Of a stretch of 64,000 nucleotides of DNA, positions 5,212 through 59,017 are shown piece after piece. The DNA comes from Klebsormidium nitens. Lineage: Eukaryota > Plantae > Klebsormidiophyceae. The stretch spans positions 1 to 64,000 of the forward strand of contig DF237110.1 in the NCBI GenBank assembly GCA_000708835.1. The letters are read 5' to 3'. Numbering within the stretch: the stretch's first letter is position 1; each line of letters begins with the position of its first letter. The notes beneath the pieces were generated by a model. That model had not been told where the DNA came from. It ran no database searches and saw only the letters and a list, made by a program, of their open reading frames with translations. The translations under genes were made by a program, and so were the position numbers.

Positions 5212-5655
5212 CCCCATGCAGCTGATGCGTGCGACCATTGCAAAGGCGAGCTGGGGATTTCTATGAGAAAGTGCTGCACCAATCAGTCCCGCAGGGAAGG
5301 GAGTATGATAACAGGAGCTGCCGCGCGCCTGATTGCAGCAACACCCTGATCGAGATCTACAAGATTCAAACAACCTAACAAGCTTGACACTGACCTGAGA
5401 TCTACAAGCGCTAGTAAACGCTAGTGCAGCTTGTGAAGATAGCTACTAGCTTGTAATTAGCTTGGAGTCATGAGAAGGGTGAGGCTTCCAGACTGAACAA
5501 GAGGGGAAGCGTTGTCTTACTCTTTTCCGACCATGTAAGCAGGGAGTGGCCCAGCCAGTAGTATGAAGGCAGCAGTGCGCCTAGTGGGATCTCTTCACAC
5601 TTGGTGAAGGAGTCCGTAGGGAGGCTATGCTACCTACCGTAATTGCTATGTCGGA

Positions 5656-28860: not shown

Positions 28861-29171
28861 TCGGCCGCCTATATAAACTATATAGCTGTTTATCCCGGAT
28901 GGGGGTCCTGCCGTCGCGCCGGCACGTTGCCGTCCCGGGTTGTTCATGCCGGTTTCCGATTCTCAGTTCCACACTACAGACTGTGTTTAACAGTCTTGTA
29001 CCGTTTCAGCTGTCTCGGAAGTCAGGTTGTCCCCCCTCGCAAGGGTCGTGCGCTTGTTGAGATCTCGATCGAGCTACGGTTCGCTTCATATGCCTGATCA
29101 GACGTCCCTTCAAGCTTCAAGTTGTTCACGTTCAAGTTTTGAAGGACCACTTTTCCAGCTCTTTAGAGGCC

Positions 29172-36616: not shown

Positions 36617-39335
36617 GCGAGGTTACTCTGAGGGCCTTCCTGAACGGCCGTCTCGACCTGACGTAAGCGGAGGGCATCGCCGACCTCATCAATGCGCGCA
36701 CGACCCAGACTGACGAGAGTCCGTTGTTGACAGTGCAAGTAAGACCTCTTTATTGCCAGTCACTTGAATCCTTATGAGCAACTGCGGGCTGCATCAGACG
36801 AACCTCCATAAGCAACGCCGGATTGTGCTCAGGACTTTTCAGGGGTCTCAGCTTTGCCAAAAAACCTTAGCTTTGGAGAGAGACTGAGATATGTTTGTGC
36901 TGCGTACGAGCAGCTTCGACCATCTCAATCCCGGACGGCGGCATAGAGATCAAACGCGATAAGCCTACACTTTTCCAGAGGTTCACGAACGGCCAGTAAG
37001 AGCTCAAGCACTCCAGTAGATTCTAAGCGCTTCTCTTCCCTTTCTCGCTATCGGCGGAGTTCGACCATGTTGAGCTCGTGCTCTGGAACCAAACGTCTAC
37101 GTCTTTAATGACGTCGACCAGATCAAACCCGTGCTATGTTCCTGTTTGAGTCTTCTTCTCCAGAAATTTGTGCAAATGCAATGCGATCTGGGCTACTCTT
37201 CTCTGCATAGCACTCCCGGGTGCACCTTTTGCTTCTGCTTTGTGTTCCGTGCGTCTATATCATCGCCCGCAGCTTTTAAGGGCACTTGGGCTGGGAGACC
37301 AAACTGCTTCTGCGCGGGTTTGCACATGAGTTGCGCCCTCTATGACTTTCACAAACACGCTCCGCATGTCTTCCGGCCGCACTCAAAGACGCTTCTGAAA
37401 AGACACTGCTTTGACCTTGTAACGCTGCTCTGGCATTGAATGCATTGAATTGCTATACTAAACCCCATTGTTTCTCGTTCCGTTCACCTCGGCAATGTCA
37501 CTAGACATTCTCTTGCCGCTCTGTTTGACCCTCAGAGCCCGCAGCCGGCGAAATTCTATGACCTACCTCCTGGCGCTTCTTGTCCTCTTTCTCTGAACCG
37601 CGGAAACATGAGTCTCAGGACCCTTTCGACGTCATCCGTCCCTCACGCGATTCGCCCGGCGGAACAGGCGCATACCGCGCGACAAATCCGATTCCGCCCC
37701 TGTGCCCGGTGAGCAGGGAGTAGGCAATCGTGGTCAATTGCCGTTGACGAAAAGAAGCTTATCCACATTTCCTCATCTTTCCGGTGTATTTAATCAAATT
37801 GCTCTTTGCCCGGTGCAGAGTGACCGGGCCATGGTGACCGACATTCCTGGCATCACTCTGGACGTGGTGGAGGCAGCGGTGTCGGTCGGGGGGATCCCTC
37901 TGTACCTGCTGAACACGGTCTGCATCCGATCCACGTCAGACAGGTGAGTGACAACGGCAATTCTGCATGTTCTGCTGTACGAAAGAGAGTTGGCTTTGAT
38001 CTTGGAAGAGAAGAATTGTTTGTCGTGAACTCCCCGCTTTAGGCCGGTCCTCTGGGACTTGGACGCAGCAAATAGCCTTCGCTTCTGACAAAGTCAAATA
38101 GGGCCTTCATTCACGGTCTTGGGACAAGGCCCCCACTCTTGAGCGACTCTCGACTCCTCAAGTGTGAGACATACAGCCGACCGCGCTTCCTTTCGTGCTC
38201 ATTACTGTCGTCCGTGGTTGTTTCTGTGAATTTGTTGCAAAAGTGGGAGTTCTTCCTGAATCCAAAACTCATTTTGTCCTGCAATGCGTTCCTGAGGAGA
38301 GTCAATCTTGTCACAGGAGTTTCCGTTGGGTCGAGATTGTTGCCAGCAGACGTCCTTCTGTACCTGCCACGTCAGCATGACGTAACAATTCCGATTGCTG
38401 CAGGCGTGGAGCGCTCCAAGGACGCCGCTGCGGGCGCTGTCGTGGTCGTAAAGGTGGTGAGCGCCGCCGACGGCTGGACGGAGAGCGGGCACCTAAGTAG
38501 CGAGTGGTGGTACCCGACAGCTGGCGCCAGGTGTTCGCACGGCGGGTCGCCACGTGTGCTCGGGACGGAGTCGGTCTGGAGAGCGGGCGCTGTTAAACAT
38601 TGTTGGTGCGGGGGTGGCGGCAGCGGAGGGCATCTCACGGGCGGTGAAACAGGTAAGGGCTGATTGCAGGAGCCTTTGAAAGCATTTTTGAGATTGTGTG
38701 TTTTAACCGCTAGCATAGCTGAGCGAATCTTAGAATCCCGTAGTGAGACGCTTCTTGGTTTCAACCAGGCCATCAGCACGGAAGTACTTTTCGGAGACTG
38801 CTCTAGGTTGCTCCTCTAGGTGCAATTGAGGAGGCCGCAGCACGATTGTAAGGACCGACTTGCCGTCTTCTCAAGACTTCCCGTGATTGGCTTTGCTGCA
38901 AAGCTGAAGCTGTCTTCGCTCTTGTCAGCTAGTCTTCGACCTTGCTCTGACGTCACCCTGTTCGGCTCACTTGTGCTCTGCTCTATAAAGCAATGAACTG
39001 GCAACTCTCTTCTCGCTGCACGTGTTCGACCAGGTTGCTACCTTGCCGTTGGCCATCTCTATCAAAGTCATCTCTTCTTAAGTCAATAAGAGCTGCCAAG
39101 ACGTACCTCTGGTGATCACAGGCTAAGCCGACGTCATCCTTTCTCCGCAGCGGCAAGCGGAGCAGCTAGTGCGCGCGAGTGAGGCCCTCCAGCGCCTGGT
39201 TGCAAGCATCGATGACGACTTACCAGTCGACTTTGGGAAGGTCGACGTGCGCGAGGCAGCGCTCGCACTACGTAAGAGTAGTGGGGATGACGTCACGGAG
39301 AAGGTGCTCGACGGCAGGTTCAGAAGGAAAGTGAC
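36617..39335 (+). pseudogene. mnmE: Partial mnmE duplicate 2 (exon 4, 6, 7 and 8 remnants)
   Basis: Exon 4 copy at 36617 has CTG ACG TAA (stop where the intact gene has CAA). Exon 6 copy ~37820-37940, internally deleted exon 7 copy ~38404-38652, and diverged exon 8 copy from 39151 that lacks FCIGK. Confidence 0.9.
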
Positions 39336-40450: not shown

Positions 40451-42637
40451 TCAAGATTGTCCCTTGACTCGGTACGAGAAGTCGACGGTGCACAACGGCA
40501 GCTCGTAATGCACGTTATTCATTACTACGACTCCTTGATAACCTAGATATCGCGGAGAGACCGCCAATCCAACAGGAAGCAACAGGAAGAGAATCAATCT
40601 GAACCTCTGATGCTGCTGCGGCGCCTGAGCTGCATCATAAGGCTGGCCTTTGCGACAGTAGCCTGTACTCGTCATCGGAGACATGGCAAACCAGTCTGAT
40701 CCGCTCAATACTCTCTTTTCCGGCAGCATTCCGTCCTTTAGGATGGACGGAATGTTGGCGGGCGGAGTGCCGTGGAAGGCGAAGGTGAGCGGAGCGATAG
40801 ACGGGGTGGCGGCGCCCATAAGCGTTCGGAAAGCAGCTGCATTTATACAAATGATTGTCGGAGCACGCAAGAAATGCGACGAGACGTCTTCAAGCAGAGG
40901 AAGATTCAACGAGACAGTGCTCATTCAGAAAAGGCAGGGCAAAGCACGGAAGTCCAAGGTCGAACAATGAAAGTCAATCAACTTCAGCCGTCACCCCATG
41001 CTCCAAACCCCCTTTGAGTTGCGGAAAGAAATCAGGTTCTCTGCATGCTCAACTTTAAAGCAAAGCCGTTTCCTTTAACGAGGCGCTCTCACGTACCTCC
41101 CAGCTTTGCCACGTGTCCGCTCATCGCGCCCCGGAAGCCCTGATACAGAGCACCCCCAGGCTGCGCCTGCTTGTTTATAGCAACCCGGGAAAGCTGAACT
41201 TTGTCAATTCCACGGCTGTGATTGTACGGCTGTAGGAGGGGCCCCTCGGTCACCTCTTGTAAGAAGCTGTCGATGCGCTCTTCCGAGATGAGAAAGTTCA
41301 GGACCTCCGTGACGACCAAGAGAGATAGTCAGCAGTCGTTTCAGGCTGGCTGCAGTAAGCCTCCTCAGGAACCAATCTGAATATAATAGGACAAGTTCGG
41401 ATGAAGCATCTTATCGAGACTGGATTGAAGTATTGCATGATTTCCGGGCAGAGATTGGATCATGTAATTCGGGAGGCACGCAAAGACCGGATGTTCAAAA
41501 GAAAGTCGCATGTCGGGCATTACAGAAGATAACCCAAGTGCACCACGGTTCAAAACCCTTTCGGTGGGGTTGGTCCAAGAGGAACGGAAAGTAACGCAGG
41601 AAAGAAAAACATCTGATCACAAAACGATCCCGATTCGTTCGAAAACTTCTACGCCCAGGAAGCGTCATTATCTGAGACCTTATAGCCGTAAGAGCTCTCT
41701 GATCAGAACGTATGTTGCGCGGAAGCTCCAAACCATTTCTTCACTTTCCTGTCTCTGCTTCGCCGCTCCGCACTCCGCAATCATGGCCGCGAGCGCAGGC
41801 GCAGTGCTGGGCAGCCGGTCGAAGATGATCGTCGAAGAGAAGCCCCAGCGGATGGCGCGGAAGGCCTTCGACGACGAAGAGCCGTCCCGCATGGTTGCGA
41901 ACGTAAGCAACCGATTCTCGCTCACGGGCTTTGAGTACCTGCATTGGAAGGAAGTTATCTTGGTCTGAATGAGACTGTCAAGCGGTTGATCAAGTTCGTC
42001 TTCTTTTCCTTGCCAAGCTGACTTTTGGAGGTTACCAGTTGATGAACACGTGCCCTACTGGCTGACACGTTAGGCCCACAACTCGTCGTGACGATTGATC
42101 TCGGAAAGAACCTCTCTTGTTTACTTCTGACTCTTCCCTATCTTGAAGAGTCAGATCGATCTCTTTCAATCAGGGACTTTCGTATTTAGACAATCTTCTT
42201 TCTTCGGACCAAAGATACATATATTAAACAGGCAACCAAGGCGAAATGAGAAGGTTCAGATAGCTTCGAGGTCTGATCGATTGGGCCTTACAAGATTTTG
42301 ACTTTGACAGCAGCACAAACGACCTTAAAGGCGCCGACACATCATTCTGCAGAGCGGGCTTACTTGGCCTCTGCGCGCGCGCGCTTCGTCTTTCTCTGTC
42401 CGCGCTTCGTCGTCCGCGCCGGCTGGAGCCCCTTCACCCGGGGCGACCGCCGCACTGCTTCTTTCACCTTGAAGGTCGCCCGCCCGGAAGCATACGCCGC
42501 GAGCATAGCTCGGGCGACGCTGTCCTCGTATGGCTGCCATTGCCTTGAATGGGGTGCTCTCCAGCTGACGTTCAGGCGGAGACCGCTCTTGACAGGTGGC
42601 GGTGACTTGGAAGCCCTCACCATGACGTAATCTAGAC
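40451..42637 (-). CDS. WWE + PARP-like ADP-ribosyltransferase, paralog 1 (5' exon not located)
   Basis: Exons: 42637-42364 (VSWRAPHSRQWQPYEDSVARAMLAAYASGRATFKV), 41938-~41749/41734 (LTFATMRD...RAIRWGF), ~41304-41097, 40836-40451 (FAFHGTPPANIPSILKDGMLP...DWFAMSPMTSTGYC...GVVVMNNVHYELPLCTV). At the positions homologous to the other copies, the intron 3 donor reads GA and the acceptor reads TG. In-frame alternative sites exist nearby. Confidence 0.7.
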
Positions 42638-44740
42638 CTGTTAGGAGATTGGAGAGGTTACGGGTTGTTGCTGAAATCGAGACGATAGTCCAGCTCCAGA
42701 AAGATTGTACTGGTCATTGAAAGCCGCTCCAAACAGCATTGAGCAATTGTGTCCCCTAATTAAGATGCATGATTTGCCTGAAGTCACGCGTTGACAGACC
42801 ACCTGCTCAAAATGCCCGGAGAGGGAATCTTTGGCAGTCAAACCTTCAATGAATGAGCGATGCTGTTGCCGCAATTGTAGACAGCATCCTTGGATTCTTC
42901 ATCGAAGAAGCCGGAATGTACGGGTTGAGCCAAGTGTAGACTGAAAAGGCTGAGTTTGTTCAACGCCCCTCCAATGCAATATAGCGCGCAAGAGAATGTA
43001 CAGAACTGTGAGATGCACTGCGTCTGCGACTGCACTGTCCAATTGCAAGAATATTTTTCTCGAGGCAAATAAGCTTGCTAACTTTCCAATGAACCAGATG
43101 AGAGCTCGAATCATTTCGTTATGTGCATTAACACCCCAGCAAACTTGTATTCTAGGTTCGTGTGCAGAACAAACTGAAAACGTTGAGAGAATGGTCAGTC
43201 TTCAGCCTGGAATCAGCTAGCAACAGTCGTTGAGGGAATTTTCCAATCGCGCTTGTTTATGTGACCGTCCGAAAAAGCTCCAACCAACGGCTGCTTATGT
43301 GCTCGACTTAGGAATCAAAATTGGTCAAGTTAGCTGGCTCGCTCGGACCCCCTTGCGCCAGAGTATATTCATGGCGCCTTAACCACCAAATGTCCTGAAC
43401 AAAGTCACGAAGCACATGACGAAGGAATGTACCCAAACGCATGCTTTGCGAAGGTTCTCTTCTCCCAGCATCAAGTACTTGCGCACATCGCCATATTGCT
43501 CACCTGTGCTGCTGTAGATGTGCTACACAGACTTGCGCCGCTGCTTTGCAAAGCGCATGTGGTGGTGGCAAGAGTTCTTCAGCGGGGCGCAGCTAAAGAC
43601 TAAACCGCTTTCGTGGGGTTTATAAGTCTTACCTTGACGCGAGCTGCGCTCAACCAGAGTTGAGGTGCTGTCACCATGACGTCGCCTTGATGGCCTCTGT
43701 TCACGTGGTTCCGCGGCGGTTAATTCTTCGCAGCACTGTGCACATCTGTCACCGGAATATCAATCATGTGGTACCGCGCCGGGTAGCGACTCAAAGTACT
43801 GGCAAACAGTCGCCGAGGCGTTACGAGTCACTTGACGCCCCTCTGAATTAGGCCGCAGGCTTGCAATTATATAATCAATTGCAAGCTAATCTTAGATATT
43901 GTGGGCCCCTGTTCATTCTGCAAATAGAGCGTCGATTATGCCCAACATATTTTTGAAACGTTTATGCGACCAGTTCAGGTCTCGCGCGCCACCGTGCCGC
44001 CTGTGCACGCATGTCCATGCCAGTCTAAACCCTGCCCAAGACTAAAGACAATCTCCCCGCTGCATCTGACGTCTTGAACGGCCGGCTTTCTGAGCGTACT
44101 CGGACTTGACATCAAGAGCAGAATTACGATCGATTCAAAGCCACAAGAACTCTTCCTGATCCAAATCCATACTTTTTCGCATGCATCGTGCCTCATCGAA
44201 AGTTGCGTCATACGGTCTCGAAAAGCTGCAAGAATTTTACCACAAAACGGCTCTACTGCCGTGCGCTCAAGCAGAATGCGATTAAAGAGAAGTAGCGTGG
44301 AAGCCAGATCACATGATGCTATGGCGCTATTCAGATTCGCTTCTTCACTGCTTTGATTAAGCCTGTGAAAGAGCGCTGTAAACGGCTGGACTGCAAACAT
44401 TCCTGATTACATGAAGGCTATCGAAATGGTCTGCATGAACAAGTGCCGAGCTGGCAGGATTACCCATGGTTGAATAGTAAAAGAATATTAACATTGTAGA
44501 CGGACTGGGCAGAGCAGCATCTTCATAATTTCTACATAAAACAAAACCCGTACTGACGCTTCCTGTTTGCTCCTAGTCCACCATACTACCGTGACTATGA
44601 CGGGATCCGACTTTCGTTCTCAACAAGAGACCTCAGGTTAGCACGTCTGAAATCAGTGCAATGGGTTTTGATGTCTACATGAATGTTTTGTCCCCAGACG
44701 CAAGAGCTTCCGCGCGCCTAGCGACCTTAAGGGCACAATG

Positions 44741-47626
44741 TCAGTAGTACCCAGTGTACGCAACCGTGCATAATGGCAGCTCGTAACCCGGATCATCCAT
44801 CACTATAACACCATAACCTGTATGCTGTGGGATTATCTTGCTTGGAACGGGCAGCAGAAGAAAGAGGATCAGTTCAAAACGGTATTTTAAGTGCGCATTG
44901 TATTTCTTGCAGTACGGAACGCTCGTTGAAGGCGATGTGGCGAACCAATCCCCGCCCTTTCCGCACGCCCTTCTTTCCGGCAGCATTCCGTCCTTCAGAA
45001 TGGACGGAATGTTTACATGCGGAGTGCCGTGAAACGCAAATTGGAGCGGCGCAATCGCATCGGAGCCGGAACCCATGGAGGATTGAAGCGCATCTGCAAA
45101 AGGACCCAAGAGGAACAGATTGCGCAGATTCGTTTACGAGAGACATTTTGAGAACCCTCAGAACTTTCTGTGTCCGCTATCGGTCACTATTTATGACGTC
45201 AGACCTTTGCATGGTGCCCCGAATAAACAGAAGCCTGGATAACTTAAGGTACGGAAATTCAAAGCGGCTGCATACGATCTTAGACGGATAAGACGCTGTT
45301 TCAAGCTTGTAAGCTCTCCTCTTCATCAACGCGTAGGGATAGGCGTTTTTCTTGAATGTAGTCGATCAGGATGATTAGAATCATAGAATCCCTAAGCAAG
45401 CTTCATCTCTGTTCGCAGAAGGTGACCGCACTGATTCGTGTCTCGGGAGATTGTGGCGTAATATCTTAAGTAAAAGAGTTTCTCTACACTCACATGCGCA
45501 TGCCTCCACGAGCACGAAGCTTCGTGTGGGTTGTCAAGACTCAATCATTGATCCTTTTCCGGATAACCTTCTTGTAACCCCGGATCACCTACCTCCAAGG
45601 TCTGCCACGTGCCCCTCCATCGCGTCTACAAAGCGCTCGATCAGCAAACCCCCCGGCCGCGCGTGCTCGTTCACAGCTAGTCGGGAGACACTGGACCCGG
45701 TCTCGGAAAGGAAGCAGTCGATCCGCTCGTTTGAAATCAGAAACTCGAGCAATTCTGAGAGAACCTGTCAATGAAAGCACACGGAAAGAGTTCAAGAGAG
45801 GGAGGAGGTGAAGCACTAAAGGAAAGCAGTTGCCAGCAACACTGCAGGCTCGAACATTAGTGCATGGAAGATAAGATTGATCAAATGCTTGACTCGTAAA
45901 TTCATGAACCATGTCCAACGCTGAGATCTGAAAGTGAGCAAACGTCAACAATATAGCGACCTTGACAGTGATTAGGCCACACACAACAAGGAGTACTCAA
46001 GGGAGTTCTGACGCCAGCGCCCAAAATTGTCGACAGTCAACCAGAGGAAGCCAGGAGAAAGTTCAAATGCACGTGCCTGTCTCCTTTTCACCCGGGCACA
46101 GGCTGCAAGCATTTTGGCGAGCTCGCGCGGAGTCCTGGGCAGTCGGTCGAAGGTGCACAATGAAGTGAGGCCGCAGCGAAATTCGTAGCGTTCGTCCCAC
46201 AATCCCTCAACTTCCACTTGCATCGTTTCGAATGTCAGCACTGGGTTGAAAAGCTGACCATCTTCTTCCCTGCACGATTTGAGCAAGCTCATCTTTCATC
46301 TCCATTGCGTCGCTGGCCATTTGTTTTGCAATCGAAAGTAAGATAGAAAAATTCGTCGAAGGGGCTCAAGAAGCAAAACTGGAACGACCAGGAAATCATG
46401 ATTTACTCCAAGGCCGGAAAGCAAAACCACCATGGATTTTGGACGTGTGTTCAGGATCGCTTTCTCAATACAGATTCCCTCGGCATTAAGCTTGACGCCA
46501 GCGACGTACAAGAATGTTCTAGCGAAGAGGGTTCGCAGCGGACTAGAATTCACAGCACTTTTCTGCATCACGTGTCAACTTAGCTTGAAATCCAGTTACT
46601 GTAAGGCGTACTCGCAGGCACTCGCACCTGTTCTCTATGTGCGGCAGCGCTGGTGTCGTCTCCTTATTCTCGTTTGGCCGCGGCGACCTTTGAAGTGACT
46701 TCTCCGGCCGAAAGGTCGCTTGTCCCGCTGCCCAGGTGGCAAGGATGGCTCGGCCAACGGTGGCTCCGCACTTGTACCAAGTACTGGAACCGGGCCCTCT
46801 CAAAATCACAAACAATCTGGGGCTGCCCTTGAATCTTGGTGGCGACGATATTTTAGGGACTGTTCAGAAATAAAGTCTCTTAATCCACTTCTTCTGTCAA
46901 AGTTACCAAACAAATGAACTCACATTGTAATGAAGCTTAGCAGGGTGGACAACATTCGGAATATACAATGGCGAGAAATTCTGAAGGGGTGATCGGGATC
47001 CAACAAAAGCAATTACAATCAATCAAAGATGACATGAAGAAGAATTGCATTTGCTGAGTCATGGTCCCTTTGCTAAGCCAGCTAGCCACACAAACCAAGC
47101 CCGGCCCTTCCCAATCTTAACGAAGTTTCAAGAGTTGCAAAGCTTTTTGGTGCTCTGAAAAAGACAAAGCCCATCCCAAACCTGCCACAGACGAGAGCAG
47201 GGATGCTTCATTTGCTAAATCAGAATCAAGGAGCTGTAGTACTGGAGAATCATTCGATATCTGGTCACGTGAATGTCATCAGACCTTCAAGACATTGTCA
47301 CGGTAGTCTTTGATCCAACCAGCAAAAGTAGGGCCTTTGTGCTGTTGCTTCTCAGAATCGTCTTTGAACTTCGCGCGCGCGCTTCTCAAGCTAATAACGA
47401 CTACAGAAGTAAGAGATACTCTATGAAATTACGGTCAAGACAGCACCAGAAGAGCAGATCAAAGACCTCGAATGACATAGATAAACGTCGCTGGCTTCTA
47501 GAATGCAAAGCTTGCAGTAAGAGGCCTTCCAAAAAGCTCACCCCTGTCGCTTTGCCAGCAGCACGCCCAACAGCACCATGTCAAGAAGAAGAGGGGGAGC
47601 AGCAGCAGCAGACACCACGCGCTCAT
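44741..47626 (-). CDS. Membrane anchor + WWE + PARP-like ADP-ribosyltransferase, paralog 2 (intact, ~340 aa, 5 exons)
   Basis: Exons: 47626-47542 (MSAWCLLLLLPLFFLTWCCWACCWQSDR), 46859-46628, 46269-46092 (or to 46077 with a GC donor), 45764-45593, 45093-44741. Phases 1, 2, 0, 1 are all consistent. ART motifs: FAFHGT, NIPSILKDGM, GDWFATSPSTSVPYC, GVIVMDDPGYELPLCTV. Confidence 0.85.
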
Positions 47627-47771
47627 GGTGTCGCTTCGACGACGAACCCTATCTCCTCAATTAAGCAGGTCGTACGAGGGCTTTTCGAACGTTTCGTTCA
47701 AGGTTGACGATTCGTCTGCATTTGACAGCTCGGTGCGTACCGGTCGCCTGAGACGAATAGCCTGAGAGACG

Positions 47772-47787
47772 CCCGGTACGTACCAGG
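47772..47787. promoter_or_regulatory. Conserved GTAC palindrome upstream of ART paralog 2
   Basis: cccggtacgtaccagg (one mismatch), ~146 bp upstream of the ATG. Homologous to 52449 and 58651. Confidence 0.5.
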
Positions 47788-47815
47788 CATGCAGACGCAG
47801 ACACTCGGGCAGGCT

Positions 47816-48510
47816 CTAATCGCCGGGCTTGCGCACGAGTCCTGACCTTTCCAAACCCTCCTCTCGGCTACCCCTTTCTGGCCTGTCCCTCGTCCCGCCC
47901 GTGCGGGTTAGATCACCAGCTTTGCACTTCGAAATAGAGTCCATTTCGAGGGTTTGTTTTGCGTGAAGCTCAAAGGAGGTCCCGGCGCGGAGCCTTTGCG
48001 ATCCTGGCCTCGGGGTAGCGGGCAGCGGCGGCGTGTGCGCGCGCGCGGCAGCACGCACCTGGTGGACCAGCACATGGGCGCGAGAGCGAGCGGCTCGCCG
48101 GGTCGTGGCGCTCCACTTGGCACCTCCAGAGCTCTCGAAGTGCCACGTGGCAGCAAGATCCCGGTTTGAAGAGTCCGTCAGTGCAACTTCGGGAGCGAAG
48201 CCGCGCGCGGCGCGGTTACGAGCGCAGGACGATCGCCGGGGCAGTGCTGAGGTCACGCTCAGGGCCGAGAGCCCGAGGCGCAACACTTCGAGGGAGGAAA
48301 TCCTGCTCACATCCACGCTCGCCGCGCTCAGTCTGCTCACAAAAGCGTTCGCGACCGGGGATCCCTGGGAAGCTGTCTTCGTGCATCATCGGCTTTCTAA
48401 TGTTTTCGTGCTGACACTCTCAGTGACCGACTCGTTGTCTCGACGGAGTTTGACAACCAATTGCGGGCAACATTATAGGCAGTGATTGGCATGGGCATGC
48501 TGCACGGGCA
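47816..48510 (-). pseudogene. Remnant of an unknown companion sequence in the ART array spacer
   Basis: PVANAFVSRLSA and tgtcatgcccgtg..catgcccatgcca match PVTNAFVSKLRA and tgtcatgcccgtgttgcggatgcccatgcca at ~54550-54730. No product is recognisable. Confidence 0.4.
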
Positions 48511-49265
48511 TGACACTAAACAAGTGTTCAGCTGGTAGCTTCTACGACTAAAACGAATTCGTCTGTATGTGCCTAAGGAGGGCCCCGAGGTAACATTCAA
48601 TGTACCCGCTGATCTTGGATCTTGGACAGCTTTCACAAGCAACGGGACATCCTAGGTAGTGAAATAACAACCTCGCCTACAGCCAGGTAAAAATCTAGGA
48701 TACGCACGCGTCGACCTCATCAAATGTACGTTGGCCTTCCGCTTTCTAAAAAGTTGTAAGCTTTTAGCTTGTGAGAAGCAATTCTGCGCGCTGCAAAACT
48801 TCGTGCGCGCAAGCACCAATGCGACTCAATCTGAAGTAGCGTGTCAGCCAGATTACCGCACGTTTCCAATGCTTCGAAGAGAAACTCTATCTTAGTCTTC
48901 CTAGGAGCATGAGGGACGCTGTAAACAGGCCGGGTTGAGGTATGCGGCTGAAAGGGAACAATCTTGATCCTGCAAACCATCTCATGAATAAAGCTGCATA
49001 TGACGTGTCGAGCTGGCAGAACTTCCCGCAATGTTACTTCGGGAAGAAATAGAAGGACCAATAAGAGCAGCTTTTCGATTCTTTGTACATACAAGACCAC
49101 CTCCACTTATGATTCCTTTTGATGCGTGTCAATCCTCCTTGTACAAGAACTCGACGTCTCCAGGACGTTTGGTCTCCCGAGAGAGAACTCAAACATGCAG
49201 ATTTGATTCTTCAATCCATGGCCGCACGATTGTCTACTTCTCTTCTGCCTCGAACACAATTTCAA

Positions 49266-52200
49266 TCAACACCAGTGCCTGTAAGACACAGTGCATACAG
49301 GCAGCTGGTAACAAGGATCGTTCATTACTATTATATGAGAATCTGTATATTCTCGGATCACGTTCTTTGGGACAGGCAGCAGCAGAAAGAGGATCATTGC
49401 AACCGGGTTGTACCCCGTACGCAAATCCTTTGTCAAGTGTTTCCGGCAGTAAGGGACGCTTGTCGAAGGTGACGTGGCGAACCAATCCCCCGCCACGGGC
49501 GCACGTCCTCTTTTCCGGCAGCATTCCTTCCTTCATAATGGACGACGTTTGCAGGAGGCCGAGATTCAAGAAGCGTCAGGCTTTCCATCAAACTCTCAAA
49601 TGCTTGCGCTTTGCTCTGTTTCGTGGCGCGGCGCTACTCCTGACTGCGCCTGACACTAGATCTATAGGATAGCGGACAACTGAGGACAAGCATGTTTATA
49701 GGCGGATTGCCATGGAACGCGAACTTGAGCGGCGCAATCTCAGGGGAACCGTAACCCAGAAGGGATCGAAACGCTTCTGCAAGGATGGAGGCGCAAGAAA
49801 GAGCGCTAATCAGTTAACAAGTAATTTGTAAATAGGACACGTTTGAAGACACTTATGTTCACCACCCGGCGCCAGTTTTCAACTGCCTTATGCTTGGTGC
49901 CCTGATCTCCACAAAGGACTCCTGAAATACTGCGGCGAATGGTTGAACATGAGCGGCTGAGTATTATATTAGACTTTCTTCACTTCCGTAATCAAGGCGC
50001 AAAGACTGAAACAGCATCTAACTGAAAGGAAGCAGTTTCTTGCCCGGAGGTCGAGGGGTGCAAAAGTGGCTGAGTCTAAGGAAGACTTATATAAGCGGGC
50101 GATTTGACCGATGGAGACATTCAATAATAAGGATCTATTTACTGTGAAGCTCTAGACATTCTTTCTCTCTTTGGCAAAACCCTCTTCATTCAAAACCTCG
50201 TCACGTACCTCCAAGATCTGCCACGTGTCCCGCCATCGCGTCTAAGAAACGCTCAAACAGCGCACCCCCCTGCCGCGCGCGCTCGTTCACAATGACTCGG
50301 AAAGATTGGAGCTGGTCTTGGAGAGGAAGCGATCGAGGCGCTCGGTCGAAATCAGGAACTCTAGCAACTCTGAGAGAACCTGCCAGAGAGTTTGCGCACA
50401 TCAGATGTGTTCAGAATTTGGAGCAGGAGGAAGATATTAGATTCTCAAGGGGTTCGAATCAGTTCGATTCGAGGTGTAAAGTAAGGAACTGACATAGATG
50501 GAAGAGGTTCGAAAGACAAGATTGCTCTGGAAGACCGGACCTATCTGCAACTCGAAGAAACCTTCTCCAAAAGCATAATTTTTATTAAAAAGGAAAGCTT
50601 CCCTCTGGATCAGCAAGTCCCTCGGTGGAATTGAGGCCTTGTGTGACGGGGAGAACTGACGAACGGGCGAAAACCAAATGATCAGATTTATAACCAACTG
50701 AGATTGATATCAGTGAGAGACACTCACCAGTCTCATTTTTGCTTGTTCGCAGTTTGCAATCATCTCAGCAAGCGCGCGAGGGGTGCTGGGCAGCCGGTCG
50801 AAGGTGCAGAACCAAGAGAAGCCCCAGCGGAATGTGTGGCATTCATCCGACCCCTCAATCCCAGCTCGCATCGTTCCGAACGTCAGCACGGGGCTGGAAA
50901 GCTCAGCGTCTTCTTGCCTGCACGGTTTGAGTTAGCTCGTTGCGTTTGTTGCAGAGGCGAACCAGGACAATCGAAAAGGTTACCTTTTGAATTGCTCATT
51001 TGCTTTGAGGGACCTGAGAATGGAAGTAAGGTGGAAGAGATTGTCATAGGCGCTCAAGCATTGACGATAGTAGGGCGACCATTGACATTCTGACCGATCT
51101 ATGTCGAAGTAACTATTGATGGATATAAAGTTGGAAGTGTTCTCAGTATGGCTTTCGAAAATGCCCACCCGACAGTAGAACTTCATTGATCGAGTGTCAA
51201 AGACAATTCTTAGGAAGAGAGTCTGCAGCGAAAGAAGCCAGAAGAAATTCTCTGCGTTACATGTCATCGTAGCTTCAGAAACTGGCTTTTGTAAGGCACC
51301 AGCTGTTGCGCGCGCCTTCCTGCGCCAACGTGCGTACCTGTGCACGACGTCCGGCAGTGCTGATGTTTTCTCCGCTTCATCGTGAGGCCGCGCCGGCAAC
51401 TTTGGAAGCGGCTCCTCCAGCCGAAAGGTCTCCTGTCCCGCTGCCCAGGCCGCAAGGATGGCTTGACCAACACTGGCTTCAAACTGGTACCAAAGTTTTG
51501 AATCGGGCGCTTTCCATTGCACGACCAACTTGGGGCTGCCCTTGAATATTGGTGGCGCTGATGCTGCAGGCACGTTGAGAAAGAGTTTTCCCTCTTTCAA
51601 CTCCAGGCAAAATGAAAATATGAGTTCTGATGATAGCTGGAACATTTGGATACGAAGGCGGGATGTTTACAGGGGTCTGTCAAAAATGAACGAGACAGTT
51701 GCGATGAAATGAAGATTACAACAAACATTGTAAACAAAGTAGTACGTTCTGGATCTTCGGCCAGCTGGCCAGACCTACCAAGTTCTTCCTAGGCTCAGTT
51801 TCATTTCAAGACCCGCAAAGCCTTCCAGATTCTATGTGAATACTAAACTCATCCCCATGCTGCAGACGAAACCAAGGATGCTTGATTCTGAACAAAGTTG
51901 CTGCATTAGTAGGGATCTTACGAAGTTGGCCACGAGTTGGTCCTCAGAATCACGACTTTGTGGTCTTTTTGGAGTGTTCCCAACATCAACCAGCAAAAGC
52001 TGAGCTTCAACGACTGTTGCCACCTCAGCATCTTGTTCGTGGCTTTCCGTGCTTCTTCTCGAACACAGGTGGGCGTATTGCAGCTTATTAACGACTGCAA
52101 AAGTGAGGGACTTTGAACAAAGTTCACGGTTGATGATGCAGAAGAGCAGGAAGACTTACGATGACGTACATGATTGCGCTAGCTGCTAGGATGAAAAGCT

Positions 52201-52305
52201 CTCACTGAAGGCTCCTGCAAGAATCTTACCCTTCTCGCTTCGCCAGCAGCACCATGTCAAGAAGCAGAGGGGGAGCAGCAGCAGCAGCAGCCACCATGCG
52301 CTCAT
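49266..52305 (-). pseudogene. Membrane anchor + WWE + ART paralog 3 (disrupted)
   Basis: Exons: 52305-52230 (MSAWWLLLLLLPLCFLTWCCWRSEK), 51563-51338, 50917-50728, 50379-50209 (171 nt vs 172 in paralogs, a -1 frameshift giving TGA), 49776-49266 (FHGN, ~144-bp insertion, +1 G before DWFA). Confidence 0.85.
49547..49690. other. ~144-bp insertion inside the ART exon of paralog 3
   Basis: Splits FAFHGNPPINM from SIMKEGMLPEKR and is absent from the other three paralogs. Boundaries are approximate. Confidence 0.75.
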
Positions 52306-52448
52306 GGTGAGTCTTCGACTTTGGGGCCTATCTCCACATATCAGGCGGGCCGACTTCTCGAGTTTTTTGTTCGAGTTTGCAAGATGGTTCGTCTGCAATT
52401 GCCGGCTCGGTGCGCACCGGTCGCCTAAGACCTGTAGCCAAAAAGACA

Positions 52449-52464
52449 CCCGGTACGTACCGGG
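52449..52464. promoter_or_regulatory. Perfect 16-bp GTAC palindrome upstream of ART paralog 3
   Basis: cccggtacgtaccggg, ~144 bp upstream of the ATG. Confidence 0.5.
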
Positions 52465-52537
52465 CATGCTTTGAAGCGGCGCATCCTAAAAAGCTAATCA
52501 TTGAAAGGGGCAGACATGCATCGCGAGTCTGTGCTAC

Positions 52538-54730
52538 CTAGTAGTCACTCGAAGCCCTAGCTGCGCGCAGGCTTCTAAATGCCATGCAGGCGGATCTGGG
52601 GTCTTGAAGAATCCGAAGGTTTTGCAGTCGACTTTTCGGCCGCTGCGCGCTTGTGTGACTCTCGATCGGTATGGAAATCGCCGATTCACAAGGCCTCAGT
52701 GAGAAGGGCGACGTCTTCACTCTGTGCCTCCGAGGACCCGTCTCTATGAAACTCAAGAGAAATAATAGTAAGCCCAGATAATAGTAAGGTAACCGCACTG
52801 TGACGGGTAGGGTTAGTAAGGTGGTTAGGGTGGGTACGGGTGCGGAGCGGGTGTTTCCTTATAGGTTAGGGTTTTTAGTGTTAGTCGGAGCTTACTATTA
52901 TCTTGGCTTACTATTATCTTTCTTGAGAATTATCCCGTCTCTCCCTCCGAACTGCAGTCTGCAGGCAGGCGGCCGCCCGCCGATGATCTGGCGCCATCGC
53001 TTCCTTTGCAAACTTCCTCCTGGTGAATGCTGACGTCAGCCGACACCGACTCTGCAAATTCGGCCAGTGCGCTCTTGGTCTCGCCGCCTGTCTCCTTTCC
53101 CTCGGCTTCATCCCCCGGGCTCTGCTTCTTCCTTTTGGGAAGCACGTCCTTCCCGAGCCGGTTTCCAGTCTAGATCCCCCCCGGCTACGTACCGGGGGGG
53201 TATTTATACTGCTGTCGGTGATGAGGAACCAGGCTTCCTCCGAATCAGCCGCACTTGTCACCCCACGGAAAGAGACCGGACTGAAATTCTTGCTTCTCCC
53301 ATCCTTTTAGGACCACAACAATATGTTACTCTGGTCTTCAGCGATAGTCGCTTTCAGTGCACTTTAAATCTTCAGCGGCGTAACCAGCTCACTTCGCAAC
53401 CCACCGTCAGCTCCATTTTCCGTTTCCCGCCGTACTGCTTGGTCAGAACCCCCAGTGAACCGTTTCTGCATCGTTTTCTTCCTCCCCTTGCCCGTGACAG
53501 CCCATGTCCCCGCTGATTGGAAGTGTTTCATACTTTCGGCGCTCACTTCCTGTCGACCACCCGCTCGCTCGTCCGTGTCAGTTTTGCTCATTTTCTCCTC
53601 GTTTATGTCCTCCGGGCGCTCAAGCCGCCTTTCTACGATGCCTTCTGGGTCGGGATTCGGCTGCGGTTCAACGGGGCTGTCTAAAATCACCTCGACGGCA
53701 GCCTGGCGCGCACGAAGCCGGTAACGAACCTCAGATAGCTAGAAGCCGGCGCTGCCAGCCGCCAAAAAGGGCCCTTCTCCTGACCGGGGGATCCCTCCCT
53801 GTTCCCTGGGCTCCTTGGTTTAAGCGTTGGCTTCCACGACTTGGATTTGTCCGTAACCTCGTGTCTGGAGCATCTGATGCCCCCTGATTGAGAAACTGAA
53901 GTATCTTGCTGAGGAACAGATGGCCAGCCCCGATTAAACCGGTTGAAAGTCTCCTGTCCCGACAAGGTTGACGCCTCTTGATCGGAACAAAGCTTACGAA
54001 ATACGAGCATCCAACAGCCAATCCCATGGTTGCCATTTCGTCGTCGGAGACAGGTCCGAGGTGCTCCGGAAACGGTCCTGCCGTTACCTCTGGAGCGGAA
54101 CCCTTCTCCGCCTCGCGCCTCTGTGGACACGGTCTGACTTCTCCTGATCAGAACTTTCAATGTCTGGCGCTCGGACACGGCCTAAGCTTTGGCGAGTAAT
54201 AGAAATTTTCTCCGCAACTGGATCCCCGCTTCTTCATTGGAGGCTGCCCCCTGCGTCGGATTCGAAACGACAACTAAGTGCCTTCTCCTAGCCCAATTCG
54301 TGAGCCCTTGTAAAAGAAACGGCCTTTCCGTCTGGAGCCGATCCCGCCAGTGCGTCTCGATTGAACACGCTCTTGCCTGATGGCTCAAAGTATGGGCGAA
54401 CGGGTGATCTACCACATGGGCTGGTCTGCATATAATTGCATTTGAAAAATCAGAATCTTTCAAAAGAAACAACATTCTGAGTGAGATGTTTTGTTCACAT
54501 ATCCCCGCTCGCGCCCTGAGTTTGCTCACGAAAGCATTCGTGACCGGGGGATGATCTGGCAGCATTTCTCGGCATCAGCGACTTACTAGGGTATTCGTGC
54601 TGACTGTCCCAAGCTGGAAGCAATGATGTAGCGACAGATTCTTCCTTTCGTTAGAGATAATAAGCAACCAAGGGCAAGGATTGATGGGCAATTCTTTGGC
54701 ATGGGCATCCGCAACACGGGCATGACACTG
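52538..54730 (-). pseudogene. Decayed low-complexity (acidic/disordered) ORF between ART paralogs 3 and 4, interrupted by a MITE
   Basis: Protein-like fragments in shifting frames (PVTNAFVSKLRARAG; DSPVEPQPNPDPEGIVERRLERPEDINEEK; DLDWKPAREGRASQKEEAEPGDEAEGKETGGETK). Removing the 52746-52933 MITE and one TSD rejoins SSEGETG to PRRHRVK in frame. Confidence 0.45.
52746..52933. mobile_element. MITE (MULE-like, 188 bp)
   Basis: Perfect 9-bp TSD cccgtctct (52737-52745, 52934-52942). TIRs ctcaagagaaataatagtaagcccagataatagtaag / cttactattatcttggcttactattatctttcttgag. G-rich core. Confidence 0.88.
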
Positions 54731-55502
54731 AGCGAGCACGAGACATTCAATTGGTCGCTCTATGTTTCAAAACGGAGCTGGAGTAAAAGACGCTTCGTTC
54801 GCAGAAATAAGGCCAACAAAAAAGTCAAATGAATGCCCCGCTGAATCAAAACTTTGAACGGATTCGTAAGTGACTGGACAGCAAAGCTTTCTGTAGCGCA
54901 ACCAATAAACCAAGGTGTCGTTCACAGGCACAAGGAATATTCCAACCATGACCGTCCGACGGTCCATAGATCTGAGCTTGAACAATTTTCAAAGCTGCGA
55001 GCAATTCACCATGTTATCGATTACTGCTTCTCTGCGCTGCAAAAGACGTGCACTTAATTTAGCAAGCATGCCGCAATTTAGAGTAGCGTGTCATGAGCCA
55101 ATCGCAAGACTCGTGCCAGTGCTTCGGGGGAGAATTCGATTCTTTATTACGCCTAGGAGCGTGAGGGGATGTTGTAAATTAGGCTGGGATGCAATATAAT
55201 CTGTGATCCACAAAGCCGCTCTACTGGTCTGAAGATCGAGTGCCGGGCTGGTAGAAGTACCCGTGTTTTCACGAGCAATGGAATAAGTAACTGGCGGTCG
55301 AGCAGCTTCGGTCCATATGCGTCTAAGAACAAGCTATTCTGCTTCCCTTTTGCTGCCCGCAAATCCTTTTTTTTACGAATTTTCCGCATCTCTTGCACAT
55401 GAATACTTATGATGACAACACCATGATCTGATGTCTCTGATGGCTGCATCCCTGCTTGGTCTTGAAACTGCGATAGCCTAGCGTAGCTGATCGTTATGCC
55501 TG

Positions 55503-58469
55503 TTAACAATGTCTGAAACTAACGGTGCATAACGGAAGCTCGTAATAGGTATCGTTCATCACTATAACACCGGAATTTGTGAATTCTCCGATCACCTTTC
55601 CCGGAATAGGCAACAGCAGAAATAGTATCATCTTAACCGCATTCCACCGCCCAGACTCAGATAAGAGGTGTTTCTGGCAGTACCAAACGCTCGTCGAAGG
55701 TGACGTGGCAAACCAGTCCCCGCCGCGGCCGCACGCCCTCATTTCCGGCAGCATTCCGTCTTTCAAAATGGACGGAATGTTCATTGGCGGAGTGCCGTGG
55801 AACGCGAACGTGAGCGGCGAAATGGCAGGGGAGCCGGAACCCATGAGGGATTGAAGAGCATCTGCAAAATTTCGCATGCAGAAAAGAAGCGCAAATCAAG
55901 TTGGTGAAGAGCATCGGATAGCTAAGTGTGGAAAGTGATGCCCGCTTTCTGTTAACTTTGTAAACATCAAGTAGCATGGTGCCCCGCTTCTCGCTGATTT
56001 AGGCCGGATGAAGCGGTAGCATAAAACTGACGTCCGTTGCGACTCATTCCTCAAAGTCACTGCACCTTCGAGTGCTTTTCGGATTCAAATTGGCCTTTGG
56101 CCTTTGAATCTTTTGACCACAATTTGTTCTGTGCAAATAGCTTTCTTTTTCAAAGAGCGCGAAGGTAAGAATATATTTATGTGGGATCTATACCGCAACT
56201 GGAATCATGATTGGAAGTCTTGACAAGCCCAGGTACCCGCCCGGGAACCGTTAGTATCAAGGCTCTTTGGTCTGCTCGTCTGCCTTCCTTTCTTTTCTAG
56301 GATTCTGACCCGTCTTACCTCCAAGGTTTGCCACGTGTTCCGCCATCGTATCTGAGAAGCGCTCAAACAGCAGATGCCCCGGCCGCGCGCGCTTCTTTAC
56401 GTAGAGTAGGTGAAGACGCGGGCTGGTCTTCGAGAGAAACTGATTAAGGCGCTCGACCGAGGTCAAGAACTCCAGCAGTTCCGAGGACACCTGTTTGAGA
56501 GTTCGTGTACAATCAAAACACTTTTCATCTTGAGGCGAGAATAGACGTGAGGCCCTGAAGGCGGTTCAGTTATCGCAAACTTAAAGAGAAGAGGAATGAA
56601 AGGCGCACGAGATTGCTCCCGATCTATCTGCCCACGTTAAAATCTGTCCCAAGGCCGATTGGATTAAAGCGAAGAATCTGCGACATGTGTAAGCAGTCTC
56701 TGATAAAAGCAGGCCGTACATAAGAAGGAACTCTGGCAAATGGGCAAGAAACTTTTGCGCAGTTCAAAAAAAAAGAAAAACGATTCAAAATGGAACGAAA
56801 ATACACTCACTCTCCGCCTTCTCAGCCGTTCGCAGCTTGCAATCATTGCGGCGAGCGCACGGGGGGTCCTGGGCAGTTGGTCGAAGGTGCACGTCGAAGA
56901 GAAGCCCCAGCGGATTGTGGAGAAGTCCTTCGACCCCGTAGTTTCAGCGCGCATCGTTGCAAACGTCAGCACGCGGGAGACGAGAGTCTTAGCCTCTCCT
57001 TGCCTGCTCAGTCGGAGAATAATCATCGGATTTGTTGTGCATTCTGGAATCAAGAGGGAAACGAGATGAAAATGAAACGGCTGTTTCTTTCAAAGTGCGT
57101 CTAAGGTCCTTTCCAAAGGGCCGAGAAGGATAGAAACATGGAACAGGTTGTCGGAGGTGCTCATTTTAGTTTAGTGACTGTGGAATACTTCGATTCAAGG
57201 CATTACCCTTATCATGGCTGAGACTTTTGGTCATATTGTATGTCCGAACAGTCGACAACTGAGCTCATGCGGCGCTCAGAATGCCAATGACAAACGTAAG
57301 GCTCATCAGTCAAATCTCGGATTGGGTTTGTGGTACCAATTTCCTCTGATCTTCCTTACTGTTTGCTTTGTTCATCTTTTGAAGACTCTGAAAGACTAGC
57401 CTGAGTTGTGTAAAAGCACGAGCTTGTACCTGATTCGGTCCTTGTGCGGCCGCGCTGACGTCTTCTCCACATCAACGTTGGGCCGCGGCGACTTTCGAAG
57501 CCGCTTTTCGAGGTAAAATGTCGCCTGTCCCGATACCCAGGTGGCAAAGGATAGCTCGGCTAACGCTGGCCTTATACTGACACCAAGTGTTTGAACCGGA
57601 CCCTTTCCAGCTCACTGCCAATCTGGGGCTGCCCTTGAAAGGTGGTGGCGTGAATGCTGCGTTCAGGACAAGAGTGAGTCGTTCAGACAAAATATGGTGT
57701 ACTCAGCTCCAGCAAAACGGAGCAACCAAAGCCTAACAATATCTTGGCTGGTTTGAGACTGGAATATCAGCTAGGTAAACTGTGGGAACGGTCACAGGGG
57801 TCGCCAGACTTCGTGAACAAAGACAACTGTCCAGAATCGACAGACACACTAAGCATTGCGTTTCATCGAAGCAGTGGTGCAATCCAGCTTGTTCACTCTT
57901 TTTGAAGCTCTTCTTTGTTTCCGGTGTTCTTTGGATATCAGGAGCACTGAAATCTCGAAGCAGAAGCTGACCATCCAAACATGCGGAGACGAGAGTAGGA
58001 CTGGTACTTCAGTCACTGTACGCTGGACCAAAGGGCTCTCTGCTCAGACTGCTTTTGAAGCTGGTTATTGCAGGCGGTCATAAAGAGTCCAGAAAGCCAT
58101 GACTCTCCCTTGAGCATCTGGGACCGTTTCCAAATTAAGTAGGGAGAGAGGGCTGCAACGACTAAACTTTGCCCTCCTCAGAATCTTGTTCAAGGCTCGC
58201 GCGCTTCTCAGTAACAGGTCGACCTTACTGTAGCCTGTTGACTGCAGAGTGGGAGATTGTGAACAAAAGCCACTTCGTAGCGACTAAACACAGCAAAATA
58301 ACTCCACGAATATCGTGAACGTGTGCTGGCTGCTGGAGCACAAACCTCTCATTCAATCAGCAGCAGCTCCTAAGAAAAGCTTACCCCTGCCGCTTTGCCA
58401 CCACGCCCAACAGCACCAGCTCGCCGTCAAGAAGACGAAGAGAAAGAGCAGCAGCCAGAACGCGCCCAT
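55503..58469 (-). pseudogene. Membrane anchor + WWE + ART paralog 4 (single +1 frameshift; pseudogene or sequencing error)
   Basis: Exons: 58469-58385 (MGAFWLLLFLFVFLTASWCCWAWWQSGR), 57656-57430 (227 nt; ATCCTTTGCC vs ATCCTTGCC in paralog 2), 57003-56811, 56490-56319, 55861-55503 (FAFHGTPPMNIPSILKDGM...DWFATSPSTSVWYC...GVIVMNDTYYELP). All other exons are open with canonical sites. Confidence 0.75.
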
Positions 58470-58819: not shown

Positions 58820-59017
58820 ACTCTGGTAACTCCCATTTCACTTTAGAGCCATTCACTTAGGATAGGCGCCCGGGAGACGGGTAGGGTTGGTATGGTGGTT
58901 AGGGTGGGTTCGGGTGCGGAGCAGGTGATTCTGTTGGTTAAAATTTTTAGTTTGTTTGCCCGGGTACCTTGGATCTTAAGTTAAATGGCTCCTAAGTGAA
59001 ATGGGATTTACCAGTAT
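58820..59017. mobile_element. MITE (MULE-like, 198 bp)
   Basis: Perfect 9-bp TSD tgcaagaag (58811-58819, 59018-59026). TIRs of ~55 bp ctggtaactcccatttcactttagagccattcacttag...cccggg / cccggg...cttaagttaaatggctcctaagtgaaatgggatttaccag. G-rich core. Confidence 0.9.

Follow-up and report, generated by a model that had tools for sequence, protein, structure and literature searches.

Four colinear paralogs on the minus strand of contig DF237110.1 of the streptophyte alga Klebsormidium nitens (assembly GCA_000708835.1), located at 40451-58469 of the 64,000-nucleotide stretch analysed here (positions 1 to 64,000 of the forward strand; hereafter the window), probably form a tandem cluster, evolving by birth and death, of a small and unannotated WWE-PARP-like family. 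Each gene encodes a WWE domain (a reader fold for ADP-ribose or nucleotides) that is joined through a helical linker to a compact ADP-ribosyltransferase (ART) fold of the PARP type, with nothing after it. New here are a streptophyte WWE-PARP-like family that lacks an RST domain and, within the array, a derived form with an N-terminal anchor. The cluster is in decay: copy 3 is dead, copy 4 carries a frameshift, a splice donor of copy 1 is doubtful, and copy 2, the only anchored copy with an open frame, has a degenerate WWE domain.

The tandem array and the state of its copies

Exons were mapped by hand from the sequence and their coordinates were fixed by script, giving five exons each for copies 2, 3 and 4 and four for copy 1.

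42623-42364, 41938-41749, 41304-41097 and 40836-40451, minus strand: copy 1, last four exons only
47626-47542, 46859-46628, 46269-46077, 45764-45593 and 45093-44741, minus strand: copy 2, encoding the anchor (first exon), WWE (second and third) and ART (fourth and fifth, stop included)
52305-52230, 51563-51338, 50917-50728, 50379-50209 and 49776-49266, minus strand: copy 3
58469-58385, 57656-57430, 57003-56811, 56490-56319 and 55861-55503, minus strand: copy 4

Blocks of exon size occur in four copies, 4.3-6.1 kb apart and 64-88% identical in DNA sequence, and the intervening DNA and introns have diverged. When the copy-2 protein was searched against the window with tblastn, these four copies alone were matched. 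A preliminary description of the sequence had placed four colinear minus-strand paralogs at these coordinates, with matching intron positions and phases; its positions are right, the phases are 1, 2, 0 and 1 in each copy wherever the exon exists, and the motifs that it quoted (FHGT, GDWFA..S..YC, VIVM.D..YELP and IRW) are all present. Its view of the array as tandemly amplified, strongly diverged and partly pseudogenized is likewise borne out by the exon blocks and by the lesions in the copies. The public gene model KFL_001610050 (GAQ83764.1, 1042 amino acids) is a chimera that joins exons of all four copies to spurious intergenic pieces, such as those near 53.4-54.0 kb and 47.8-48.3 kb, and should be split, since one model covers four separate paralogs.

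Copy 2 (44741-47626, minus strand) has the sole uninterrupted frame, with a spliced model of 1035 nt encoding 344 amino acids. The donor of its intron 3 is GC (within 46082-46070) and the remaining introns are GT-AG. Copy 2 alone lacks residues that the other five paralogs compared share without exception, including the first WWE tryptophan and the RWGFSS segment, which reads RCGLTS. Copy 3 (49266-52305, minus strand) is a pseudogene: 147 bp inserted into exon 5 (49691-49545) bring in an in-frame stop, two 1-nt frameshifts arise from a surplus G in the same exon (within 49496-49482) and from a base missing in exon 4 (within 50309-50296), and FHGT has become FHGN. The insertion was considered as a new intron or a repeat and was rejected as either, since its ends are not GT/GC..AG and it occurs only once in the window. 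Copy 4 (55503-58469, minus strand) carries one extra T in exon 2 (CCTTTGCC versus CCTTGCC, within 57552-57540), which shifts the frame inside the WWE domain and is seen both in the four-copy alignment and as tblastn matches split over two frames. The copy is otherwise intact, and the extra base, which lies within a short run of T, could be an artefact of the assembly. Copy 1 (40451-42637, minus strand) has no anchor exon and begins with an ATG at 42623, closely preceded by a possible acceptor at 42637. The donor position of its intron 3 reads GA (41748-41747); the public model skirts this site via another GT..AG pair, removing part of a helix (P0001:703-1042), and an in-frame GT 15 nt downstream would be an option as an alternative donor. 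This copy also has a basic KRGQRKTKRAR stretch in the WWE loop and an insertion of about 16 amino acids in exon 4.

Rates of synonymous substitution (dS) and the ratio of nonsynonymous to synonymous rates (dN/dS) were estimated by the Nei-Gojobori method.

Whole gene, among copies 2-4: dS 0.44-0.64, dN/dS 0.48-0.57
Whole gene, copy 1 versus the others: dS above 1, dN/dS about 0.4
ART region, copy 2 versus copy 4: dS 0.89, dN/dS 0.29
ART region, pairs with the dead copy 3: dS about 0.5, dN/dS 0.44-0.48
WWE region, among copies 2-4: dS about 0.45, dN/dS 0.59-0.74
28-codon anchor exon: dS low, dN/dS about 1

Together with the residues lost from copy 2, the difference between the ART and WWE ratios indicates that the enzyme half has been constrained and the reader half is relaxing. 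Pairwise values of 0.3-0.7 correspond to relaxed or purifying selection and carry no arms-race signal; there is no sign of positive selection at the resolution of pairwise Nei-Gojobori estimates. A defence or stress role, as put forward in the preliminary description, is a guess from the tandem turnover.

The lesions raise the question of whether the whole array is debris, with all four copies pseudogenes or nearly so and function residing in the unlinked genes KFL_001310210 and KFL_004040150. We regard this as unlikely. The three lesions of copy 3, the frameshift of copy 4, the GA donor of copy 1, the invariant WWE residues lost from copy 2 and the overall ratios among copies 2-4 would all agree with it, as would a further K. 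nitens copy, on contig DF237935.1, with an in-frame stop at the conserved YC tyrosine. However, the low ART ratio between copies 2 and 4, at their comparatively high dS, implies that both were constrained for most of their history. Moreover, copy 2, spread over five exons, maintains its 344-codon frame, its splice sites are usable and no ART motif is missing, and the lesion in copy 4 amounts to a single base of possibly artefactual origin.

Predicted folds and the active site

Structure and profile work was carried out on copy 1 (P0001:703-1042), exon pieces and paralogs, which stand in for spliced copy 2. Copy 1 was modelled with AlphaFold2 on a 69-row family alignment (predicted local distance difference test score 75.7, predicted template-modelling score 0.69). 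Residues 147-338 of the model match the ART fold (VIA-align), with tankyrase 1 giving a Z score of 14.1 (163 aligned residues, root-mean-square deviation 3.1), followed by PARP15 (12.8), PARP13 (12.6), PARP10 (12.3), PARP1 (12.0), RCD1 (11.4) and PARP16 (10.1). Residues 14-125 match the WWE fold of TRIP12 (Z score 10.9, 73 of 73 residues aligned, root-mean-square deviation 2.3), RNF146 (10.4), HUWE1 (10.4, 69 of 69 residues, root-mean-square deviation 1.8), DTX1 (10.1) and Deltex (8.5). The top Foldseek matches of the same model are PARP12, PARP10 and PARP14, with E values of about 1e-5. In hhalign comparisons, the N-terminal region aligns with zygnematophyte WWE domains at a probability of 88.6% (E value 2.7e-6), with the loop insertion spanned, and one of these domains has a Pfam WWE match (E value 6e-10). 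The reading of the proteins as a WWE domain followed by a PARP-type ART is, as judged from the predicted structure, correct. The architecture first proposed, a transmembrane segment, a WWE domain and an ART domain within about 340 residues, thus stands in its two folded domains, by predicted fold and profile comparison, and needs amendment in its first element, which copies 2-4 possess and copy 1 lacks. The absence of an RST domain was also correctly described: the frames stop 5-10 residues past the last ART strand, there is no Pfam RST match, and there can be no such domain because the protein ends within ten residues of that strand.

In Pfam searches of the window proteins, a check that the preliminary description had suggested, the WWE domain goes undetected and the PARP domain stays below its cut-off. 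PF02825 (WWE) gave no match on the exon pieces, on whole copy 1 or on the paralog P0094. With PF00644 (PARP), for which the gathering score is 26.7 bits, the exon-5 pieces scored 24.7 (copy 2), 22.8 (copy 4) and 11.5 (copy 1), and whole copy 1 and P0094 had no match; the relatives P0016, P0026, P0032, P0033, P0035, P0037, P0040 and P0065 pass the threshold. A profile of the N-terminal region searched against PDB sequences found the Deltex WWE domain as its best match, at a weak E value of 0.26, and scans with PADLOC and NCBIfam returned nothing useful. The WWE motif residues VSW, W(Q/Y)P and (F/Y)E are kept in copy 1, copy 3, P0094 and P0004. Copy 4 keeps both tryptophans and has lysine at the glutamate position (QYKASV); in copy 2 the first tryptophan and the glutamate are both gone.

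The family profile matches the sequences of PARP15, PARP10, PARP13 and PARP12 in the PDB and, when aligned to PARP15, places FHGT on the catalytic histidine and GD(W/Y)F on the triad tyrosine. The second triad position is tryptophan in all four window copies and tyrosine in most relatives. By strand pattern (..G-V-I-V-M-D.. versus ..E-Y-I-V-Y-D.. in PARPs), the position of the triad glutamate appears to be occupied by glycine in copies 1, 2 and 4 and by histidine in copy 3. Residues conserved at 90% or more in a 30-sequence family alignment are the histidine, the following Gly-Thr, an asparagine, the arginine after the first helix, the second tyrosine (S..YC) and the C-terminal Leu-Pro. The conservation of the histidine, Gly-Thr, arginine and second tyrosine suggests that the nicotinamide adenine dinucleotide (NAD+) pocket is kept, and a His-Trp-Gly triad would make these proteins mono-transferases at best.

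It is possible, but in our view doubtful, that the PARP-like domain is instead a pseudoenzyme and that the proteins act as readers or scaffolds in the manner of RCD1/SRO or TASOR. Such a role would fit the missing glutamate, the tryptophan in place of the triad tyrosine and the subthreshold Pfam scores of the window proteins, and known pseudo-PARPs give Z scores close to those of active PARPs (11.4 for RCD1, 10.6 for wheat SRO1 and 12.0 for TASOR). Yet the FHGT histidine with its Gly-Thr, the arginine after the first helix and the S..YC tyrosine are among the most conserved positions of the family, whereas RCD1 lacks the NAD+-contacting histidine, and many active mono-ARTs are also without the catalytic glutamate (Citarelli 2010).

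Among PDB sequences, the family profile best matches RNA 2'-phosphotransferases (Tpt1/KptA) of archaea and bacteria, in their NAD+ motif, with an E value of 4e-8 over 34 residues, and weak Tpt1 matches also occur in Pfam and NCBIfam. These would be expected if the substrate were an RNA phosphate or another non-protein target, as for Tpt1/KptA, but we consider this highly improbable. The match spans one β-α unit, the Z scores against Tpt1 are 5.5 and 3.6 compared with 12-14 for PARPs, and the N-terminal Tpt1 lobe is absent. Membership of the Tpt1 family was rejected on the same 34 residues and Z scores, together with NCBIfam scores of 12-17 bits against cut-offs of 231-239.

Membrane anchor and subfamilies

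The segment upstream of the WWE domain in copies 2-4 is encoded by a separate exon.

47542-47626, minus strand: exon 1 of copy 2, Met followed by about 22 hydrophobic residues ending in WCCWACCW
52305-52230, minus strand: homologous anchor exon of copy 3
58469-58385, minus strand: homologous anchor exon of copy 4

The hydrophobic stretch has a Kyte-Doolittle 19-residue mean of 1.9-2.2 and ends in a Trp/Cys cluster in copies 2-4 (WCCWACCW, WCCW and WCCWAWW, respectively). It is preceded by no charge and followed by net positive charge and a proline-rich PP.FKG.P hinge; the ratios of Lys + Arg to Asp + Glu in the anchor peptides (anchor plus the 15-20 residues after it) are 5/1, 4/1 and 3/0. Copy 2 has no C-terminal hydrophobic segment, the anchor segment being N-terminal. 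The anchor exon and the DNA upstream of it are conserved among copies 2-4 (families D14, D16 and D18), and exon 1 is needed for the start of translation because exon 2 of copies 2 and 4 contains no in-frame ATG. A search for an anchor exon in the DNA upstream of copy 1, at the KFL_001310210 locus and in the related loci L002-L005 found none.

The positive-inside rule relates the charge that flanks a hydrophobic segment to its orientation, and microsomal P450s have anchors with the N-terminus outside and the C-terminus inside. Read in this way, the exon-1 segment would be an uncleaved anchor with its N-terminus outside and its C-terminus cytosolic, the WWE and ART domains would face the cytosol, and the juxtamembrane cysteines would be candidate palmitoylation sites. 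The hydrophobic stretch starts directly after the initiator Met and, in copy 2, is followed by small residues (..CWA/CC..), features that would also suit a cleavable signal peptide and make copies 2-4 secreted or lumenal ecto-ADP-ribosyltransferases. This is quite improbable: the hydrophobic run of about 20-22 residues exceeds the usual core, there is no positive N-terminal region, the charge and hinge that follow are those of P450-type anchors, and WWE and PARP folds otherwise reside in the cytosol or the nucleus. A long hydrophobic N-terminal region (..TVFLLGFFFCPPFLGFTLCALFAYLLGLGALYL..) also precedes the ART motif in a distant K. nitens member of 283 amino acids, P0042 (KFL_001410230), which may be an independent membrane-bound version.

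A maximum-likelihood analysis of 19 sequences unites copies 2-4 in one clade (support 97/96) and groups copy 1 with the unlinked, anchor-less genes KFL_001310210 and KFL_004040150 and two fragments (support 89/84). The anchor-less genes start with an ATG just before the WWE domain. A basic stretch in the WWE loop (KTKRAR, KKKRAR or KAKRAR) is found only in these anchor-less copies, the loop of the anchored copies being acidic or neutral; the stretch resembles a nuclear localization signal (NLS). The split between the two subfamilies may thus reflect a change of address after duplication.

In the scheme that we favour, copy 1 would be of the older, anchor-less type with the basic, NLS-like WWE loop, and copies 2-4 would be a younger clade that lost the basic stretch and the internal start codon and gained the upstream anchor exon. 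The anchor, possibly palmitoylated, would keep the reader and the writer on the cytosolic side of the plasma membrane or of an endomembrane. The ART fold, with its histidine and second tyrosine kept, would bind NAD+ and, without the catalytic glutamate, could add single ADP-ribose units to nearby targets.

Several points weigh against this scheme. None of the copies is intact and at the same time fully conserved, copy 2 having lost the first WWE tryptophan, the glutamate and the tryptophan of RWGFSS, and a full-length protein of the copy-2 type was not found in a collection of 5.8 billion proteins. The second triad residue is tryptophan rather than tyrosine, the glycine was assigned from the strand pattern and not from a residue-level structural alignment, and we know of no His-Trp-Gly triad that has been assayed. 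The PARP-fold pseudoenzymes RCD1 and TASOR score structurally almost as well as the active enzymes. Topology and lipidation were deduced by rules of thumb and not with a predictor.

Relatives and comparison with known systems

A HMMER search of 1.84 billion representatives with copy-2 exon 5 found 93 proteins at E <= 0.001, and the family is therefore a small, divergent branch of the PARP superfamily. In K. nitens it includes three genes in tandem that each have two WWE domains (KFL_000060290/300/320), KFL_001410230, KFL_001880230 and the copy with an in-frame stop on DF237935.1. The last (locus L002, 1633-3874) is an anchor-less copy that is annotated as two short genes, KFL_009860010 and its neighbour, and its stop falls exactly on the conserved tyrosine of the S..YC motif. 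The preliminary description had proposed a lineage-specific family; this does not hold for the WWE-ART core, which also occurs in Closterium (CLOM_g16483, WWE and ART), in Mesotaenium (ME000081S09775, two WWE domains and ART) and in the conifers Cryptomeria (SUGI_1030180/200/210, with adjacent locus tags) and Taxus. An 82-kb Klebsormidium-like contig from JGI metagenome 3300060285 (locus L004) carries two tandem anchor-less WWE-ART copies (3184-5336 and 7556-10318), so that the tandem arrangement recurs outside K. nitens. Scans of metagenome contigs for relatives gave no match. The wider ART branch consists mainly of marine protist transcripts fused to FHA, WW, UBA, UBC or ALR, none of which is named.

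The shared WWE-PARP order and the streptophyte lineage invite the view that these genes are algal forerunners or sisters of RCD1/SRO (WWE-PARP-RST) from before the addition of RST, all the more as streptophyte algae could not be examined in the two main PARP/SRO surveys, one of which left open whether SRO-like genes occur there (Jaspers 2010; Citarelli 2010). We nevertheless hold this origin to be very unlikely, and it was rejected on defining features, there being no RST domain. The histidine lost in RCD1 is kept. The family profile reaches PARP15, 10, 13, 12, 14, 1, 16 and 3 in the PDB (E <= 0.01) and has no match there to RCD1 (5ngo) or SRO1 (7plq). Conifers keep the family alongside SROs; the two lines are therefore at least old paralogs.

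Full-text literature searches turned up no publication that deals with these genes or with the WWE-PARP proteins of streptophyte algae. The suggestion that the architecture is undescribed is accordingly upheld as regards the family, for which no publication was found, but must be qualified as regards the anchor: a membrane-bound PARP is not new in itself, because a sponge (Amphimedon) protein with an N-terminal transmembrane segment and a PARP domain and PARP16 with a C-terminal one have been reported (Perina 2014). With this RST-less WWE-PARP-like family of streptophytes, the ADP-ribosylation toolkit gains a further branch close to where land plants arose. The family keeps the NAD+-contacting histidine, is repeatedly tandem, is missed by Pfam in the window proteins and is named 'hypothetical' everywhere. 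The soluble form with its NLS-like loop and the derived membrane-anchored form offer a natural comparison, the value of which is limited by the decay of the array. A bolder proposal would make copies 2-4 the first membrane-tethered ADP-ribosylation reader-writer of the green lineage, with a palmitoylated anchor, a WWE sensor and an active His-Trp-Gly mono-transferase, and the whole streptophyte WWE-miniPARP family (Klebsormidium, Zygnematophyceae and conifers, with loss in angiosperms) a fast-turnover stress or defence system unseen by standard annotation; we rate it as distinctly unlikely.

Other features of the window are as follows.

52802-52857, plus strand: G-rich block of 56 nt (GGGTAGGGTTAG..GGTTAGGGTGGGT..) upstream of copy 3, part of the duplicated unit; it recurs at 58876-58931 upstream of copy 4 with 91% identity (family D20)
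29139-30304 and 34267-35544, plus strand: paralogous Cys-rich genes with repeated C..C motifs and a weak Pfam Stc1-domain match (E values 3e-5 and 1e-3)
26863-27543, plus strand: GTPase-like frame, with a shorter, degraded look-alike at 38139-38663 (plus strand), about 11 kb off

The N-terminal regions of the Cys-rich pair are near-identical (MATIGAQLQS.. and ..EATIGAQLHS..), which looks like a second local duplication, and the GTPase-like pair probably belongs to the same segmental duplication.

Among the closest counterparts of the array are the other streptophyte WWE-miniPARP genes, which share its ART signature (NP..PG..LY.RF, FHGT..N..SIL..G..P..R, GD(W/Y)F and (E/Q)LP), have one or two WWE domains in front, occur in tandem arrays and are all named 'hypothetical'. 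They differ in that their WWE domain is seen by Pfam, the anchor exon is absent and triad position 2 is mostly tyrosine. Among animal proteins, PARP11 and PARP7/12/13 (Clade 3E) likewise lack the catalytic glutamate, and PARP12, PARP10 and PARP15 are among the best fold or sequence matches. However, Clade 3E has isoleucine (or valine) at the glutamate position, in contrast to the His-Trp-Gly triad of the K. nitens array, and Clade 3 as a whole, that of the WWE-PARPs, was reported to be without plant members (Citarelli 2010). The array also differs in its N-terminal anchor (copies 2-4) and long WWE-loop insertion, and the likeness is one of fold and sequence match.

The land-plant RCD1/SRO proteins (Clade 2) share the streptophyte lineage and the order of WWE domain and PARP fold, with RCD1 matching the ART model at the Z score given above; the array proteins differ in having no RST domain or C-terminal extension and in keeping the histidine, and their family coexists with SROs in conifers. 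Tpt1/KptA shares the near-identical 34-residue NAD+-motif stretch, but its overall fold match is weak and the array proteins lack its N-terminal lobe. In its membrane attachment, the anchored form is comparable to PARP16 (ARTD15), a mono-ART of the endoplasmic reticulum membrane, which also places a small PARP fold on a single hydrophobic segment (Perina 2014) and matches the model with a Z score of 10.1; the anchor of PARP16 is C-terminal and it has no WWE domain, whereas copies 2-4 combine an N-terminal anchor with a WWE domain. The PARP12-like protein of the sponge, likened here by its description, has the same order of N-terminal transmembrane segment and PARP domain (Perina 2014), but it is an animal protein with no WWE domain reported.

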